Part shown: piece by piece, positions 3,227 to 24,067 of the stretch | Layout: the number at the start of each line of letters is the position of its first letter | How positions within the stretch are numbered: the stretch's first letter is position 1 | Sequence record: MN453779.2 | Reading direction: 5' to 3' (one strand) | DNA: 64,000 nucleotides | The notes under the pieces: generated by a model | Told to the model about the DNA's origin: nothing | The model's input: only the letters and a program-made list of their open reading frames with translations | Databases searched by the model: none | Made by a program: the position numbers and the translations under genes

Positions 3227-4102
3227 ATGATTATAAATGGTTACGACACCACAGTCGGTAGTCGTTTTAAAGTAAAAGACAAAGCAACTGAAACCATTCG
3301 AATGCTCCAAAGTAGCGATAAATTGGAGTTGGTGGATCAACGTGGGGTTTACGCAATCTCTCACAAGAATGATTACAATCTTCCTCCTTTTATCTTCCCT
3401 ATTTCCACGCAAAACTACATGCGTGAAAAAGTAACTATTTTTGATCAACGTCCGTACATTAATAAGGAAGGTAGAAACGTTAATCTTCCCGAATATAATG
3501 TCATGTTGTTAGCTGCCTGTTTGCAACAAGATCTGCAAAACAATCAAACCACTTTGATCAAATCAGTTCGTCCATTTACTATCAAAGCATTCGCTAATGC
3601 AATGGGTCGTAAACTGGAACGCATGGTAATGCTGGACGTGAATCAATCTATGGTGGTTCGCGTCATCCTAGCTTATTATTATGTTTGTCTTCTGGAAAAT
3701 AGTCGAGATGACTTTGCATTCGTAGCCCAGAACAGCATTCATGGTGCGCTGCGTTTTCCTATTCCTTTTATCCAAGAGACAATCAAAGATTTGGGTTTTG
3801 TTAACACTCTTCCAGAACTACTGAAGGCACTGACCACTCATCCTGCTTTGCAATCTCTTTCTCGTTTGGATCTTCCAGGTCTGGTACAAGCTGGCACCAC
3901 CATCTTCTTTTCTACCTCTGGGTTTAAACAACTCATGGGTGCTGCACTAGAGATGCCTGCATTGTTCACTGCTCTGTGCTGGGGTGCTGCTACTCAACGT
4001 ATTTACCAAAACACTATGATTGGTGAAGAGTTGAACGTAAAGCAAGACAAACGTGTAGAGACCTTCATCAGTACTGTTGGATATTATTTTAAATCAGCCT
4101 AA
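3227..4102 (+). CDS. Virion structural protein (phiKZ gp28-like)
   Basis: 291-aa ORF, first gene of the block between sheath and terminase. Assigned by synteny. Confidence 0.5.
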   Translation: MIINGYDTTVGSRFKVKDKATETIRMLQSSDKLELVDQRGVYAISHKNDYNLPPFIFPISTQNYMREKVTIFDQRPYINKEGRNVNLPEYNVMLLAACLQQDLQNNQTTLIKSVRPFTIKAFANAMGRKLERMVMLDVNQSMVVRVILAYYYVCLLENSRDDFAFVAQNSIHGALRFPIPFIQETIKDLGFVNTLPELLKALTTHPALQSLSRLDLPGLVQAGTTIFFSTSGFKQLMGAALEMPALFTALCWGAATQRIYQNTMIGEELNVKQDKRVETFISTVGYYFKSA

Positions 4103-4118
4103 TCAACTGGGGTAATCC

Positions 4119-6935
4119 ATGACAGCTTATGTTGCTTCGCACACCCAGGAGAATAATCCACTTGTCGATTATGCATTTAACACGATGTGGGGTAATCCAG
4201 AATTGGATTCTCAATATCAACTTAAGCTTGCTCGGGTTTCTCCAGCGCTTGGTTATGTGAATAACTTCTTCTATATGGGGAAGTCGTTTACACTACCAAG
4301 TGAAGGTGTGTTTTATCATGTCTTTTCAATGGGTGGTTTAGACCTCGACTACTGGAATATGGGTAGTCGAGGCAATCACTGGTATCCGTTTAATACTTGG
4401 GTGAAAGCTTCCACTATTTCTCATGATCGTGGTGTTGGGTTGGATGTTTATAATAGCAAAGGTAGAATCTTTCCAAGAACTCATACCTATATTTTAAACA
4501 CCTTCGAGGGGAACACTTTTGTAGCATTCCCTATTAATGGTAATTATCCAATTCCTGTTAGTAGTAACATGTATATTCGTTGTTACACGACAGATATTAA
4601 CACTGCGATTATTCCAAGTGATCAACAAGTTAAATGGCGATTTGGTTATTCTGGGGTAGAGTTTGTAACTGGTTCTGATTTAACCAATTTGAAGAATCAT
4701 TACAATGCTTATTTAGCTTATGGTATTGGGAAAGTCACTTTCTTTGTAAATGGTGTTATTACTGATATTAGTAAGTATGTTGGTCGTATTGGTGATCTGT
4801 TAGAAGTTTACTACGATCCAACTATCAAAATGGAAGTAAAGTACCAGTACGGTAGTTTGAATGACTATTACTCTGAGAAAGATAGTAAACGAAAACTATT
4901 AATTTTCCCAGGGTTTACTGACAAACCTCGTAAATACCAGTACTTTGATGATTGTGAGTTCTTCGTAGTTAATCGGTTAACTGGGCTAGGTCTGTATTAT
5001 CATCGTAATAGTCAAGATGCTATTCGTCAGTTAACTCATCAGGATTATGGATTAACTTCTGACTACGTAAGTTTCTTGATTAGTGAACTTATTGGGTTGA
5101 GTAAAGGTAAAGCAACTGAGAATGATTTCGATGTTGTAGTTCGTTACAGAGATACTAAGTGGCAATTTAATCTAGGTCCCAATACTAGTCGTATTAATGA
5201 TCTTTACTTACTGGAAGATCCAGCAGTAATTCTTCAGGCGATGATTGGACCTCATGCTACTGTAAAAGAGTGGACTCCAAGTGAATTGGAGAAAGCTCCT
5301 TGTAACTATGTGCTCAACTCTATTGCACCAAAGATCACCACTGAACGTGTAAGAGACGCTTTAGGTTACAATGGTTGTTCTACAGCTCTGTCTGATTCAC
5401 CTCTGTATATGCCGTTCATTACTCCTGGTGATCCAGCCTTTGAAGATATCTTCCCAACACCACCTTATACTTCTGGGTTAGGATATCGTATTCCTGCTAG
5501 TTATGTTGAATCATCTACGGCTTATGAGTATAACAAAGATGGATTATATATCCGTAAGAGTTCTATTCGTAATAGTGAATGGTTTAAACCAGGCCAGGAT
5601 ACTCACTACGTGGAGTTTGTAGTAGGTCAGGCCAGTACATGGTTAGACTATGAAATTAGCAGGGTAGATGTCCAAGCTAGACCTGGTTATGGATTCCGGG
5701 TATTTAAAGCAGGCTGGATTATTGATGATAATCCAGAGCCCACACCAGATACTAGTTTGTTTGCTAATGAAGTAGCAATTACTTCTGACGGTAATGACAT
5801 CTATCCTAGTCCCACAGAGTTAAGCATTGGTGGTGATTTAACATTAGCTAATCCAGTTGGACCTGTGACCACAGGTAGACCAGATGGCAAGTGGGTCGAC
5901 ATTACTGACAGTAATGAATACCAAGTTATCGATGGTGTTATTAAATGGAAGTTCGATACCAACAACCACGTTGGATTAGTTATCTTTGATACCATTCATT
6001 TGTATAACGAATTTGATCTAACACATGTTGATAATTCCGTTTACTTTGGTATTACGCACCAGTGGGAAATTGGTGGTGTTCTAGCTACTATGGAACCTGG
6101 TCAACTTGATGTCTGGTGTAATGGACATCCATTGATTGAGAACGTGGACTATAAGGTAGAATATCCTTATGTATACATAATCTCTAAAATGTGGTTAGAT
6201 CAATCTGGTACAAACAAGTTTGCTTATCGTGGACGAGGACTCAGTGCTGGTGGTTTGATCCCATCTAGTGAACTGGGTTTTGTAATGGATGGAGTGATTG
6301 GGCACAACGGTCGTTATAATCTTCGCATAGATCGTCCCACAAAGACTATTATTAACGGTAGACTTTGGATCACCTCTGCAATTGATCAAGCTGAAGATAT
6401 TCATCACGGAACTAATGTAGCTGTATTGAACGGATTCCCCTATGAGGTAAAACACATCTACTGTGATAATAAGTATGTTGAACAGTGTGATTTACATTGG
6501 GGATTTAAAGAATCCAGAGAGCTTGATAAGAAGGTTAGTGACTACTTGACAGAACACGTTAAGTACAAACCTAAAGCTCCTGTTAATTATCCGTATCTTC
6601 AGGAAGACCGTTATAGACTCTTTAGTCCATTCTTAAGTCAAATTGTAAATGAACTGATCTTAGGTTTCTTACCGACTCCTACGCCTAGCGATACGCCGAT
6701 TAAATATCCAGACAGTGTAATTGATAATTTAACTCGTCCTTATCAATGGTTGTTGAAGTTTGATCCGATTAAACTTAACATGGATTTGAGATTCTTCTCT
6801 GTTCATCCTTACAGTAATCTTACTCGTCCAACTGTTACTCCTAATCAATTAACAATTATCTCTCGAGTTAACGATTTGTATCTCGATGGTAAGTTGAAGA
6901 TTGAAGGTTTCTTTGAGGTATCGTCTAATGTTTGA
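4119..6935 (+). CDS. Large virion structural protein (phiKZ gp27-like)
   Basis: 938-aa ORF, GGGGT RBS, Y/N/G-rich and beta-rich composition. Assigned by synteny. Confidence 0.5.
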   Translation: MTAYVASHTQENNPLVDYAFNTMWGNPELDSQYQLKLARVSPALGYVNNFFYMGKSFTLPSEGVFYHVFSMGGLDLDYWNMGSRGNHWYPFNTWVKASTISHDRGVGLDVYNSKGRIFPRTHTYILNTFEGNTFVAFPINGNYPIPVSSNMYIRCYTTDINTAIIPSDQQVKWRFGYSGVEFVTGSDLTNLKNHYNAYLAYGIGKVTFFVNGVITDISKYVGRIGDLLEVYYDPTIKMEVKYQYGSLNDYYSEKDSKRKLLIFPGFTDKPRKYQYFDDCEFFVVNRLTGLGLYYHRNSQDAIRQLTHQDYGLTSDYVSFLISELIGLSKGKATENDFDVVVRYRDTKWQFNLGPNTSRINDLYLLEDPAVILQAMIGPHATVKEWTPSELEKAPCNYVLNSIAPKITTERVRDALGYNGCSTALSDSPLYMPFITPGDPAFEDIFPTPPYTSGLGYRIPASYVESSTAYEYNKDGLYIRKSSIRNSEWFKPGQDTHYVEFVVGQASTWLDYEISRVDVQARPGYGFRVFKAGWIIDDNPEPTPDTSLFANEVAITSDGNDIYPSPTELSIGGDLTLANPVGPVTTGRPDGKWVDITDSNEYQVIDGVIKWKFDTNNHVGLVIFDTIHLYNEFDLTHVDNSVYFGITHQWEIGGVLATMEPGQLDVWCNGHPLIENVDYKVEYPYVYIISKMWLDQSGTNKFAYRGRGLSAGGLIPSSELGFVMDGVIGHNGRYNLRIDRPTKTIINGRLWITSAIDQAEDIHHGTNVAVLNGFPYEVKHIYCDNKYVEQCDLHWGFKESRELDKKVSDYLTEHVKYKPKAPVNYPYLQEDRYRLFSPFLSQIVNELILGFLPTPTPSDTPIKYPDSVIDNLTRPYQWLLKFDPIKLNMDLRFFSVHPYSNLTRPTVTPNQLTIISRVNDLYLDGKLKIEGFFEVSSNV

Positions 6936-21595: not shown

Positions 21596-21624
21596 AAATT
21601 GATGATTCAAGAGGGGTGTTATCC

Positions 21625-21875
21625 ATGAGAGAAAATACTTTCTATTAAGCTTTGAGTTTCAACAAGATGTGATAGAGCATGAAGCAACAGAAGAGTTTAT
21701 TCAAACATGGATAACAATGTGGTCCGGCGACTGGAACTCGAATCCAGAAGACTTACGTCGCCACATTTTAAGTATGGTCCCTTTACCGATTTGGGCACCG
21801 CCGGAATATATAGATCGGATCTTTCTCTTTGTTGTCATGAACACCAATAGGTCTCATATTGTTTATTTACCTTAG
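21625..21875 (+). pseudogene. Small ORF with an apparent 1-nt frameshift after codon 3
   Basis: GAGGGG RBS and ATG at 21625 stop after 7 codons. One extra A in the A4 run at 21632-21635 would join it to the 21669-21875 frame. Confidence 0.4.
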
Positions 21876-21968
21876 TCACTTCAATTCGAGTCAAAGTGTA
21901 ATTTTTCGGATAAATGTTAGATTGACAAGTTTCTTGAGAAAGATCTAAATTGAGGAAACTTTGATTAC

Positions 21969-22229
21969 CTACAATTCGATATCAAAAGATATAGGATTTT
22001 CTTTGGTGAGCTTTGCAAGGAGTTCGGTGTATCCACCAATCAACTCCCCATCAAGAAAAATCTGGGGGACGGTAGAAATCTCCTTTCCGCACAACTTACT
22101 TAATCCGTCTTTACCGATACCGGTTGTAACGATATCGATGTATTCAAAATCAATTTCTTTTTGTTCTAAGAGATCCTTAGCCTTTACACAATAAGGGCAA
22201 TTTTCTCTGCCATAAACTTGTGCTTTCAT
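21969..22229 (-). CDS. Glutaredoxin
   Basis: CPYC active site plus TVPQIF and IGGY motifs. Confidence 0.92.
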   Translation of the reverse strand: MKAQVYGRENCPYCVKAKDLLEQKEIDFEYIDIVTTGIGKDGLSKLCGKEISTVPQIFLDGELIGGYTELLAKLTKENPISFDIEL

Positions 22230-22323
22230 TTACTACCTTAAATATGGTAATAACCAGCTAGATTAAATAAGTGAGATAATGGGTAAAATTTTCTATTATA
22301 CTTATTTAACCAAGAGATTTAAA

Positions 22324-22400
22324 TGGTGGGCCTGGTGCGATTTGAACGCACTACCTAAGCCTTATGAGGACTCAGCTCTGACCAAGTGAGCTACAGGCCC
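22324..22400 (-). tRNA. tRNA with CAT anticodon (Met or Ile2)
   Basis: Full cloverleaf: GGGCCTG/CAGGCCC acceptor stem, CT-CAT-AA loop, TTCAAAT T-loop, encoded CCA. Confidence 0.92.
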
Positions 22401-22420
22401 TTGATTTACAAAACTTTTAT

Positions 22421-22924
22421 CTATAGCTTGAGCGTGTATCCCATATTCCGACAAACTTTTCTGTACTCTTCAAGATTAAATACTCCATTACAATCCGTGT
22501 ATTTAATCAAAGTGTTCATAGGTAATCCGGTGATTTCACAAGCTATTCTACATGTGGGATAACGTTTACCGTTAACATTCCATCCGGTCTTTTTGCGTAG
22601 CTTTTTTAGAGCGGCGCGATGTTTTTCTTCTGAGTCCCACCAGTTATCTTTACTTGTCCCTTTCATAAGGTGTTCTGGATTACAACGCCTTCTATTATGA
22701 CATGTATGTCTAACCACTTCTTCTTTTGTTATTTCACCATTGAAGACTTTATATACAAACCTATGAACAGACTCATTCTTACCAAGAAACCCATTTGGAT
22801 GAAATTGACCATAACCACCGCTAAGAGATCTGGTCCATTCCCAACATTTGTTTTCTTGATTAATAAAAATATGTGGTTTGATTTTATCTTCAAAAATAGT
22901 AAACAGTTCTTGATTAATCGTCAT
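22421..22924 (-). CDS. HNH endonuclease inside the tRNA cluster
   Basis: CWEW...GYG...VHRF.Y...VVRHTCHNRRRCNPEHL motif. Start placed at ATG 22924 behind a GGTGA RBS. Confidence 0.88.
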   Translation of the reverse strand: MTINQELFTIFEDKIKPHIFINQENKCWEWTRSLSGGYGQFHPNGFLGKNESVHRFVYKVFNGEITKEEVVRHTCHNRRRCNPEHLMKGTSKDNWWDSEEKHRAALKKLRKKTGWNVNGKRYPTCRIACEITGLPMNTLIKYTDCNGVFNLEEYRKVCRNMGYTLKL

Positions 22925-22944
22925 TTTATCACCATTAATCAAAT

Positions 22945-22977
22945 AGGTCGGAGCTCTAACCGCTGAGCTAAAGACCC
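22945..22977 (-). pseudogene. 5' half of a tRNA ending at U33
   Basis: GGGTCTT-TA-GCTC-AGCGGTTA-GAGC-T-CCGAC-CT corresponds to positions 1-33 of a tRNA. No matching 3' half is found. Confidence 0.8.
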
Positions 22978-22984
22978 TGTAAAA

Positions 22985-23061
22985 TGGTGAGCTCGGTGCG
23001 ACTTGAACGCACGACAGGAAGCTTAGAAGGCTTCTATTCTATCCAACTGAATTACGAGCTC
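22985..23061 (-). tRNA. tRNA-Arg (TCT)
   Basis: GAGCTCG/CGAGCTC acceptor stem, GAAGC-CT-TCT-AA-GCTTC anticodon arm, encoded CCA. Confidence 0.93.
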
Positions 23062-23064
23062 TGA

Positions 23065-23300
23065 ATAGGTGGGTAGGAACAAATCCTACCCGACATGTAT
23101 TACTTCGTTCTATCCCCAAGGTGCGCAAATGTCCGACCCGGTTTAGGGTTGAAATTATCAAGTGGTAGATTCGGAAGTAATAATGTTCTTTGAAATAGGG
23201 CGAGATGTTAGACCGGACTTTATACCGGTATCTCCTGGTGGTAAGTTCACCAAGCAACTTATTTTCAGTCTACTAACATCTCTAAGTCGAGTAACTAGAT
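23065..23300 (-). ncRNA. Candidate structured RNA or leader upstream of the tRNA operon
   Basis: Stems at 23202-23211/23273-23282 (10 bp), 23099-23106/23174-23181 and 23071-23078/23084-23091. TATATTAT promoter-like motif on the minus strand at 23329-23336. Confidence 0.45.
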
Positions 23301-23360
23301 TAACTATTTACTTCTACTATACTTCAACATAATATAAACATTATGCTTATTAAATAAAAA

Positions 23361-23391
23361 TACTCCTAGTTAGTTGGAGTAACTAGGAGTA
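23361..23391 (-). terminator. Terminator hairpin
   Basis: TACTCCTAGTTA/TAACTAGGAGTA with a T tract on the minus strand. Confidence 0.7.
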
Positions 23392-24067
23392 AAACAAAAA
23401 CGCATGGAAGCATTTTTGAACGGCTCGTTACTTTTTAATTAACTCTTTATAAAAACTAATTAAAAAGTAAGTGTTGATTTAACACCTACAAAAATAAACC
23501 CTACAGGAAAAAGAACAAAACAATGAAAAGAAAACCAACGCACGAAGAACCCCGAGTTCTTCCTTAAGAACACTTTGTTAAATATCCTTAAGGAAGAGAA
23601 GATGTAGGGATCATCTTCTCTGGAATAACAAGCACCTAAACGTACATGAAAGCAAGGGAATACTTTCCTAATAGTAACTCTTTTAGAATTAACATTAGGA
23701 AAGCCACAGATATCTAGGAGGAGGAAAATATCTGTGACTTTTTATTACGGAGGCTTTTCAAATGCAAGAAGCTAACTGTTAGCGGCAGTCTGACTTCTTT
23801 AAGTTCACTTAATAAAAATAAACTTAAAGAAATAAGGTAACAAATAATATTAGATGCTACCTTAAACCAAAGCGGTATAAAAACAATCAAGGATCCGATC
23901 ATGAAAAACACTACTGGTAACTACCGAACGTTTTTCTTTCACATATAATAAATAACTTGTTGTAAATAAATAAAAATATTTAAGTCCCATAATTTTTCAG
24001 ATAGATATTATTTTAATGATAAACTAGTGAGGTTTAATTTTAACCTTAAGTGTAGAGAGGGTAGTTT

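Follow-up and report, generated by a model that had tools for sequence, protein, structure and literature searches.

In Aeromonas phage PS1 a transfer RNA (tRNA) gene with a CAU anticodon survives as a 33-nucleotide stub, and we consider it likely that this stub is the scar of a homing-endonuclease event that carried a linked substitute tRNA. The window analyzed is the whole stretch of 64,000 nucleotides (nt) from sequence record MN453779.2; its positions 21600-23400 are 100% identical, with matching coordinates, to PS1 (NC_070998/MN032614), a 237-kilobase (kb) jumbo phage of the genus Ferozepurvirus, and likewise to phage PS2. In the event that we propose, a unit of 700 base pairs (bp), consisting of a free-standing HNH_3 endonuclease gene and an intact tRNA(CAU) (B), would have replaced the DNA from the anticodon arm of the original tRNA(CAU) (A) to the CCA end of the tRNA that came last ahead of the glutaredoxin gene. 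In co-infecting genomes that do not have the nuclease gene, the enzyme would nick or cut tRNA genes within or close to the anticodon arm, and repair of the break would copy that gene into the cut site; the broken tRNA gene would escape further recognition, and the differently sequenced tRNA of the same anticodon brought by the unit would make up for the loss. The cleavage specificity, the resistance of B, and the biased inheritance are what we infer here. The minus-strand order (stub at 22977-22945 ending at U33, HNH gene, and complete tRNA(CAU) of differing sequence) had been described in a sequence-only reading and is confirmed by ARAGORN, Rfam, and Pfam for the genes and by comparison with relatives for the stub, as listed below with the neighboring features (AVP1 is a sequenced relative of PS1, and L059, L071, L072, and L074 are contigs described below).

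22985..23061, minus strand: tRNA-Arg(UCU), intact, first of the array, 7 nt upstream of the stub (ARAGORN; Rfam, 62.9 bits); 100% identical to AVP1.
22945..22977, minus strand: 5' remnant of tRNA(CAU) A, positions 1-33, of which positions 1-30 equal the intact gene of AVP1 and L074.
22248..22947, minus strand: 700-bp presence/absence block (20-nt leader, HNH open reading frame [ORF], 20 nt, tRNA B, and 76-nt spacer), delimited by contig joints and blastn against L071, L072, and L074.
22910..22942, minus strand: predicted hairpin over the HNH start, a 9-bp AU-rich stem around the Shine-Dalgarno sequence GGUGA and the AUG; conserved in L059.
22421..22924, minus strand: HNH_3 (His-Me finger) endonuclease gene of 167 amino acids, a tRNA-array dweller of the phiR1-37 g107-like family, with the substitution C80R.
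22324..22400, minus strand: tRNA(CAU) B, intact, 67% identical to A (ARAGORN; Rfam, 61.1 bits).
21969..22229, minus strand: glutaredoxin gene (Pfam), an ancestral resident, syntenic with phages D3 and N1M2 and found in the HNH-less contigs L071, L072, and L074.

ARAGORN and Rfam together call three tRNAs here, all on the minus strand (Arg[TCT], tRNA[CAT], and Leu[TAA]). The stub comprises the 5' strand of the acceptor stem, the D arm, and the 5' strand of the anticodon stem, with C32 and U33 as its last bases. We compared it with the sequenced PS1 relatives AVP1 (L001), ACP1 (L002), and pAEv1810 (L003): its first 30 nt agree at 30 of 30 positions with the intact tRNA(CAT) A of AVP1 (L001:2925-3000), which stands in exactly the corresponding place, position 31 is C in PS1 and G in A, and positions 32-33 are the same. 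The resemblance to CAU-type tRNAs noted from the sequence alone is thereby borne out, and an intact counterpart, whose presence in relatives had been set beforehand as a check, was found in AVP1 and L074 and, as a mosaic of A, in L071. A home-made tRNA hidden Markov model run with nhmmer detects the stub as model positions 2-34 (E = 2e-4); Rfam misses it even at an E value of 10. The 3' half of A has no match at three or fewer mismatches across the window or the whole 237-kb PS1 genome, and exact-pattern scans of IMG/VR and JGI with the stub 30-mer gave zero matches.

Alignment of PS1 with AVP1 (blastn) shows homology stopping at 22945 and resuming at 21952, with 992 bp standing in for the last 41 nt of A. 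This stretch is more than one unit, as public sequencing runs show. Contigs of two wastewater runs (X1 and X17) join 22247 to 22948 with 100 other letters between, and the AVP1 type, with 21949 joined to 22948, is found in a contig from a mollusc metagenome. Four further contigs (L071-L074), retrieved as empty sites through their near-identical glutaredoxins, all resume their match to PS1 at 22247, which in those alleles corresponds to the CCA end of the final tRNA. Taken together, the contig joints and the rejoining at 22247 therefore place the foreign block at 22947-22248 (700 bp); this is larger than the coordinates of the sequence-only reading and includes the 76-nt spacer. On the minus strand L074 reads tRNA-Arg, intact A, a 25-nt tRNA-Asn stub (positions 1-25), and glutaredoxin; L071 reads tRNA-Arg, a mosaic A/C' tRNA(CAU), Asn, Ser, and glutaredoxin; L072 reads Arg, C', Asn, Ser, glutaredoxin, and Leu; and L073 has B, the 76-nt spacer, and glutaredoxin, as in PS1. 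The HNH block is present in PS1, PS2, L059, and runs X1, X17, and X3, and absent from AVP1, ACP1, pAEv1810, L071, L072, and L074; the HNH gene and tRNA B thus behave as one 700-bp presence/absence unit, a conclusion that these alleles support.

The glutaredoxin gene was considered as a further part of the cassette and rejected: it is present in the HNH-less alleles L071, L072, and L074, and it lies at the syntenic spot behind the tRNA array in Aeromonas phage D3 (63% amino acid identity) and Klebsiella phage N1M2 (44%), where the flanking gp014 shows 69% and 66% identity, on a par with the glutaredoxin levels. Neither the HNH gene nor glutaredoxin was found in the whole genomes of AVP1, ACP1, and pAEv1810.

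Filled and empty sites occur together in nature. The PS1 arrangement was found in 17 public sequencing runs from 10 studies (wastewater, freshwater, mollusc, and biofilm), with the junction unchanged among the environmental contigs, and in the wastewater and mollusc samples HNH-plus contigs occur beside block-free alleles with an intact A, the former at the lower depth: 7-18 versus 68, 14 versus 49, and about 10 versus 89 (contig depth being a rough guide). A contig from the European Nucleotide Archive, L059, carries an HNH protein 92% identical in amino acids to that of PS1 and agrees with PS1 in leader and junction motif (GACCT, then RTTTGATTAATGG); the cassette is placed behind the stub of another, Arg(TCT)-like tRNA that directly follows the conserved array leader. 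The identical junction thus stands behind stubs of different origin in PS1 and L059, and positions 29-33 of the PS1 stub (GACCU) may themselves be part of the incoming cassette. The tRNA downstream of the L059 nuclease is a chimera with a 5' half of type B and a 3' half of type C', whose non-complementary anticodon stem points to a crossover at the anticodon loop.

The HNH ORF runs from the ATG at 22924 to 22421 and matches PF13392 (HNH_3) at 37 bits (E = 2.5e-9; cut-off, 24.8); HNH_3 is the one domain that Pfam finds in the protein, with no GIY-YIG domain. The gene is free-standing, with 20-nt flanks that match no ribozyme. The protein has H54, R72, H73, C75, C81, N82, P83, and H85, with Arg at residue 80. 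Full-length relatives (38-46% amino acid identity) were found by tblastn against phage genomes in seven phages (Klebsiella phages Centimanus, KpLz-2_45, and N1M2, Yersinia phage phiR1-37 [g107], Acinetobacter phage SH-Ab 15599, Agrobacterium phage Atu_ph07, and Alishewanella phage Slicko01); hundreds of further matches are limited to the N-terminal HNH_3 part. Additional members came from IMG/VR (L014, L016, and L017), where a scan with the single HNH protein gave no match and the family alignment was required to find them, and from a protein database (P0001-P0004). Alignments within the family show 37-49% identity across 77-100% of the length. The family signature is an N-terminal GCW-W..S..GYGQ box with the HNH_3 core, followed by a helical C-terminal tail, W-ING..Y....A...TGL...I.K....G.F....YR..C....PK, terminating in PK[VIL]; the PS1 nuclease carries the box, the core, and the tail. 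That terminal motif is conserved as protein with varied codons, which bears on the possible reading of the C-terminal codons as a tRNA fossil.

Every full-length relative sits within a tRNA array, and for each of the 15 distinct full-length members the nearest tRNA, whole or fragmentary, is no more than 250 nt away; among the N-terminal-only matches, two of 40 have any tRNA-like match within 1.5 kb. Eight family members abut or closely follow half-tRNAs, with 5' pieces that end at tRNA positions 27/28 to 33 and 3' pieces that start at 36 to 45, from Asn, Arg, and CAU tRNAs; three contigs seem to have the insert bracketed by the two halves of a single tRNA. To judge from these borders, the anticodon arm is where the junctions of the family repeatedly lie, in tRNA genes of several isotypes.

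The individual cases are as follows. In KpLz-2_45 the tRNA-Arg(TCT) that Centimanus has in intact form breaks off after position 28, and 65 nt separate it from the HNH gene behind it. In Centimanus the HNH stop codon abuts positions 45-76 of a KpLz-type tRNA(CAU), and 22 nt upstream of the HNH gene stands an intact tRNA(CAU) of different sequence, a mirror image of the PS1 layout; the stretch shared by these two phages (tRNA 3' piece, tRNA-Leu, and Arg positions 1-28) is 156 nt at 100% identity between flanks at 75%. Contig L069 has split a tRNA-Asn that is intact in KpLz-2_45: positions 1-28 come first, then 57 nt, then the HNH ORF, whose last 10 nt are tRNA positions 36-45, and finally positions 46-76, the acceptor halves pairing at 7 of 7 positions. 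When the L069 halves are joined, ARAGORN calls a tRNA in three of 264 trials, a low count that is expected because positions 29-35 are deleted, and the case rests on the identity to the intact KpLz tRNA-Asn. For L014 (5' half, a D-armless tRNA-Arg[UCU]-like element, HNH, 3' piece) a tRNA is called in 170 of 350 combinations of the joined halves, as against 13/350 and 0/350 for mismatched controls. In N1M2 a 5' stub whose positions 6-27 equal E. coli tRNA-Asn (22 of 22) precedes the HNH gene, and an intact tRNA-Asn(GTT) of different sequence begins one base past the HNH stop; L068 has a short 5' stub, a D-armless tRNA-Arg-like element, and the HNH gene. A broken tRNA accompanied by an intact tRNA of the same anticodon is thus the layout of three genomes, PS1, N1M2, and Centimanus.

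Several tRNA-like oddities accompany these loci. The D-armless element has a long variable arm, a perfectly paired acceptor stem of 7 bp, and a UCU anticodon loop; it is found 1-16 nt upstream of the HNH gene in three unrelated contigs (L014:1402-1491, L068 at about 300-383, and L011:2364-2442). A tRNA-like gene with an anticodon loop of about 31 nt and an internal GC hairpin is conserved among Siatvirus-like Klebsiella phages (L009:3110-3206, L005:4051-4137, and L069:1-100; Rfam tRNA, 38.9 bits). A second possible split tRNA at L014:386-1354 (halves GCCGGTT.. and ..AATCGGC) is tentative and rests on acceptor complementarity; between its halves lie an intact-looking tRNA (441-512, 40 bits) and another HNH ORF, of the classic kind (598-1310), and ARAGORN calls a tRNA in none of 350 joined combinations. 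A tRNA in L060 is split at position 35/36 by about 290 nt (3908-3941 and 4231-4272), possibly by a group I intron, near a family HNH gene and a Cas12f1/TnpB-like gene.

The element is of a kind already known, a free-standing homing endonuclease in a phage tRNA cluster. What is new is the family, newly defined here; the recurrence of its junctions in the anticodon arm across isotypes and unrelated large phages; the linked substitute tRNA alongside the nuclease in several genomes; and the natural co-occurrence of filled and empty sites. It is possible, although we would place it slightly short of even, that the g107-like HNH enzymes form a widespread homing class aimed at the anticodon arm of tRNA genes whatever the isotype, which kill the gene that they enter, often carry or adjoin a substitute tRNA, and are a main driver of array turnover, mosaicism, and half-tRNA debris in jumbo and other large phages.

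Several observations weigh against the homing interpretation. ACP1 has B and no HNH gene, so that B is not strictly tied to the nuclease. The homing cassette with substitute tRNA that was proposed from the sequence alone is partly supported, by the single 700-bp block, the empty alleles in the same samples, and the equivalent layouts of N1M2 and Centimanus. The resident tRNA(CAU) of Centimanus has its whole anticodon arm in common with the broken one, and resistance by way of a diverged anticodon arm fails there. The Asn stub of L074 has no HNH gene nearby, showing that the array also makes tRNA debris by other routes, and the family members in L016, L017, and SH-Ab 15599 adjoin intact tRNAs. 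B (61 bits as a tRNA) matches neither E. coli tRNA-Ile nor the trnI-CAU-derived Rfam model, which bears on whether its identity is Ile2 or Met. Finally, residue 80 is Cys in every other family member, and the PS1 and PS2 nuclease, with its CGT codon (22685-22687), may be attenuated or dead; in all four environmental runs 22687 G>A gives TGT, Cys.

The explanation that competes most directly is ordinary recombination debris, in which the array, as a hot spot between the conserved leader and the glutaredoxin gene, would have produced the stub by illegitimate or short-homology recombination and the specificity of the HNH enzyme would be unrelated to A. We regard this as unlikely. The array does differ in each relative (Arg-A; B alone; Arg-C-Asn; Arg-A/C'-Asn-Ser; Arg-A plus an Asn stub), and the mosaic tRNA(CAU) genes in L071 and L059 and the HNH-less Asn stub in L074 are what such recombination would leave; yet it fails to account for the half-tRNAs that eight family members in unrelated phages abut or closely follow, for the ends of the 5' pieces at 28-33 and the starts of the 3' pieces at 36-45, or for the identical junction behind the two differing stubs of PS1 and L059. 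An interrupted tRNA that still works, whether through a group I intron or by joining of a split tRNA in trans, has a next to negligible probability. Insertions in the anticodon loop are classically group I introns, and L069 and L014 retain both halves, but for PS1 the absence of the 3' half from the genome refutes it; moreover, each side of the ORF offers 20 nt with no match to a ribozyme or intron model in Rfam, and L069 is without positions 29-35, including two of the three anticodon bases.

A third possibility is that the 33-nt half-tRNA is a selected, stable small RNA, either a decoy for anticodon nucleases, as had been suggested from the sequence, or a regulator. The region from stub to HNH gene (22984-22895, 90 nt) is predicted to fold into two hairpins with a minimum free energy of -23.9 kcal/mol (z = -3.0). 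In the first, GGGUC pairs with GACCU and closes the D arm, G31C adding one pair, so that the stub could form a compact structure, and its junction is constant in the environmental contigs. However, the stub ends before the anticodon and has no loop of the kind that PrrC-, RloC-, and colicin-type nucleases recognize; no terminator or processing signal marks a 3' end, the stub continuing directly into the HNH leader; and its acceptor and D-loop parts are unlike in PS1 and L059. A stub without an HNH gene also occurs, in L074, as debris. The decoy suggestion is left unsupported, and we consider a selected small RNA very improbable. The stub is probably nothing more than 5' leader sequence of the nuclease mRNA, in one transcript with tRNA-Arg. 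The second hairpin, whose 9-bp stem takes in both the Shine-Dalgarno sequence and the start codon of the HNH gene and is kept in L059, would hold HNH expression low, and as a prediction it fits the tight expression control that has been proposed for nuclease genes within tRNA clusters (PMC2330249).

We think it somewhat more probable than not that B serves the function of A. The PS1 genome has three tRNA genes in total, which makes B its only intact CAU tRNA, and each intact allele examined has one CAU tRNA in the array, alongside AGA and UUA tRNAs, the CAU tRNA of L059 being the broken chimera. PS1 has 39% GC, and its codon usage includes ATA as 15% of Ile, AGA as 23% of Arg, and TTA as 20% of Leu codons. 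The best E. coli matches of A are all annotated as tRNA-Ile, and A matches the trnI-CAU-derived Rfam model on the antisense strand at 43 bits. A, B, and C are all closer to the tRNA-Ile2 of phage T5 (68%, 60%, and 60% identity, respectively) than to its Met (55%, 47%, and 45%) or fMet tRNA. The Rfam model RF04354 ('Plastid-ycf2 5'UTR') matches the antisense of phage tRNA(CAU) and, more weakly, of tRNA-Asn and tRNA-Lys (L001, L003, L005, L009, L010, and L011), and evidently contains antisense trnI-CAU.

The array as a whole is hypervariable across L001, L002, L003, and L071-L074, with three unrelated tRNA-Leu(UAA), two types of tRNA-Arg(UCU), and at least four types of tRNA(CAU) plus mosaics; in L071 the acceptor and T arm of the tRNA(CAU) are of type C', and its D arm and anticodon arm are of type A. 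Other, unrelated HNH genes lie at the downstream edge of the array in pAEv1810 (350 amino acids; L003:4253-5305) and L071 (250 amino acids; L071:987-1739). Beyond the glutaredoxin gene of PS1 the array ends in two features:

21818..21952, minus strand: conserved spacer S, found 3' of the last variable-block tRNA in AVP1, ACP1, and pAEv1810.
21720..21804, minus strand: tRNA-Leu(UAA), last of the array, with sequences unlike among PS1, AVP1, and ACP1.

At the other end, upstream of tRNA-Arg on the minus strand, a non-coding leader (23085-23433) is 96-100% identical across PS1, AVP1, ACP1, and pAEv1810, whereas the adjoining coding DNA is 58-90% identical; it closes with an 8-bp hairpin (GGGTAGGA..TCCTACCC) directly before the first tRNA and might act as a promoter or in processing, or form a structured RNA; Rfam has no match in it. 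The 98% identity between PS1 and AVP1 near the junction was considered as a co-conversion tract, an idea that we rejected since the leader is conserved at 96-100% identity throughout the four phages.

Phage tRNA arrays are viewed as counter-defense loci against tRNA-cutting host immunity (PMC11464382, PMC11555353, and PMC13096335). A nuclease family whose repeated landings in the anticodon arm destroy one tRNA and supply another would, if this is true, supply a concrete mechanism for the fast and poorly understood turnover of these arrays and explain the orphan half-tRNAs of phage genomes. The family could also yield enzymes with new DNA specificity built on generic features of tRNA genes, and the presence of filled and empty sites together in wastewater makes the homing hypothesis directly testable.

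Among known systems, SegB of phage T4 is a GIY-YIG homing endonuclease in the T4 tRNA cluster that cuts the tRNA genes of relatives lacking SegB, recognizes the sequence coding for the T arm, and drives inheritance of the adjoining tRNA genes (PMC2330249); its homologues are enriched near tRNAs (PMC13096335). The PS1 nuclease is likewise encoded by a free-standing gene inside a phage tRNA array, and for SegB, too, relaxed recognition of a generic tRNA feature opens many tRNA genes to the enzyme (PMC2330249 and PMC13096335). The two differ in fold (GIY-YIG versus HNH_3), in the part of the tRNA concerned (T arm versus junctions in the anticodon arm), and in outcome, the target gene being destroyed in the PS1 case; the text of the SegB paper does not mention half-tRNAs ('truncated' has 0 occurrences). 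Phage T5 (L012) has the HNH genes hegA, hegC, and hegD within its tRNA array, the F-Tfl endonucleases of Akulenko et al. 2004 as cited in PMC2330249: hegA lies 23 nt downstream of tRNA-Ile2(CAU), and hegD and hegC overlap pseudo-tRNA-Gln and tRNA-Ser, pseudo-tRNA-Gln(CUG) overlapping the 3' end of hegD (L012:3345-3420 and 3398-3979). Nuclease and tRNA genes are thus similarly intertwined in an HNH lineage unrelated to that of PS1. Their BLASTP matches to the PS1 nuclease (E = 1.1, 0.18, and 0.013) are short and motif-only, with no detectable homology beyond the HNH motif.

A sequence search of the PDB with the HNH protein gave nothing at E of 1 or less. Its AlphaFold2 model (predicted local distance difference test score 73) finds I-HmuI (E = 8e-3; template modeling [TM] score 0.26) and I-PpoI (E = 0.3) as the best PDB matches by Foldseek, weak and with low TM scores. 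I-HmuI (PDB 1u3e), the intron-encoded HNH nicking endonuclease of phage SPO1, would as the best structural match share a modular build of His-Me finger and helical DNA-binding tail; unlike the PS1 gene it is borne by an intron in a polymerase gene. In Aeromonas phage Aeh1 the free-standing HNH gene mobE is said to be inserted in nrdA, splitting the gene ('genes in pieces'); there the halves of the nrdA protein reportedly assemble into a working enzyme, whereas in PS1 the tRNA is dead and its place is taken by a second gene. I-Ssp6803I, an endonuclease reportedly encoded by a group I intron, with specificity for tRNA-fMet genes at their anticodon region, resembles the PS1 nuclease in having the anticodon region of a tRNA(CAU) gene as its target; it is said to differ in being intron-encoded, so that the tRNA is functional after splicing, and in its PD-(D/E)XK fold.

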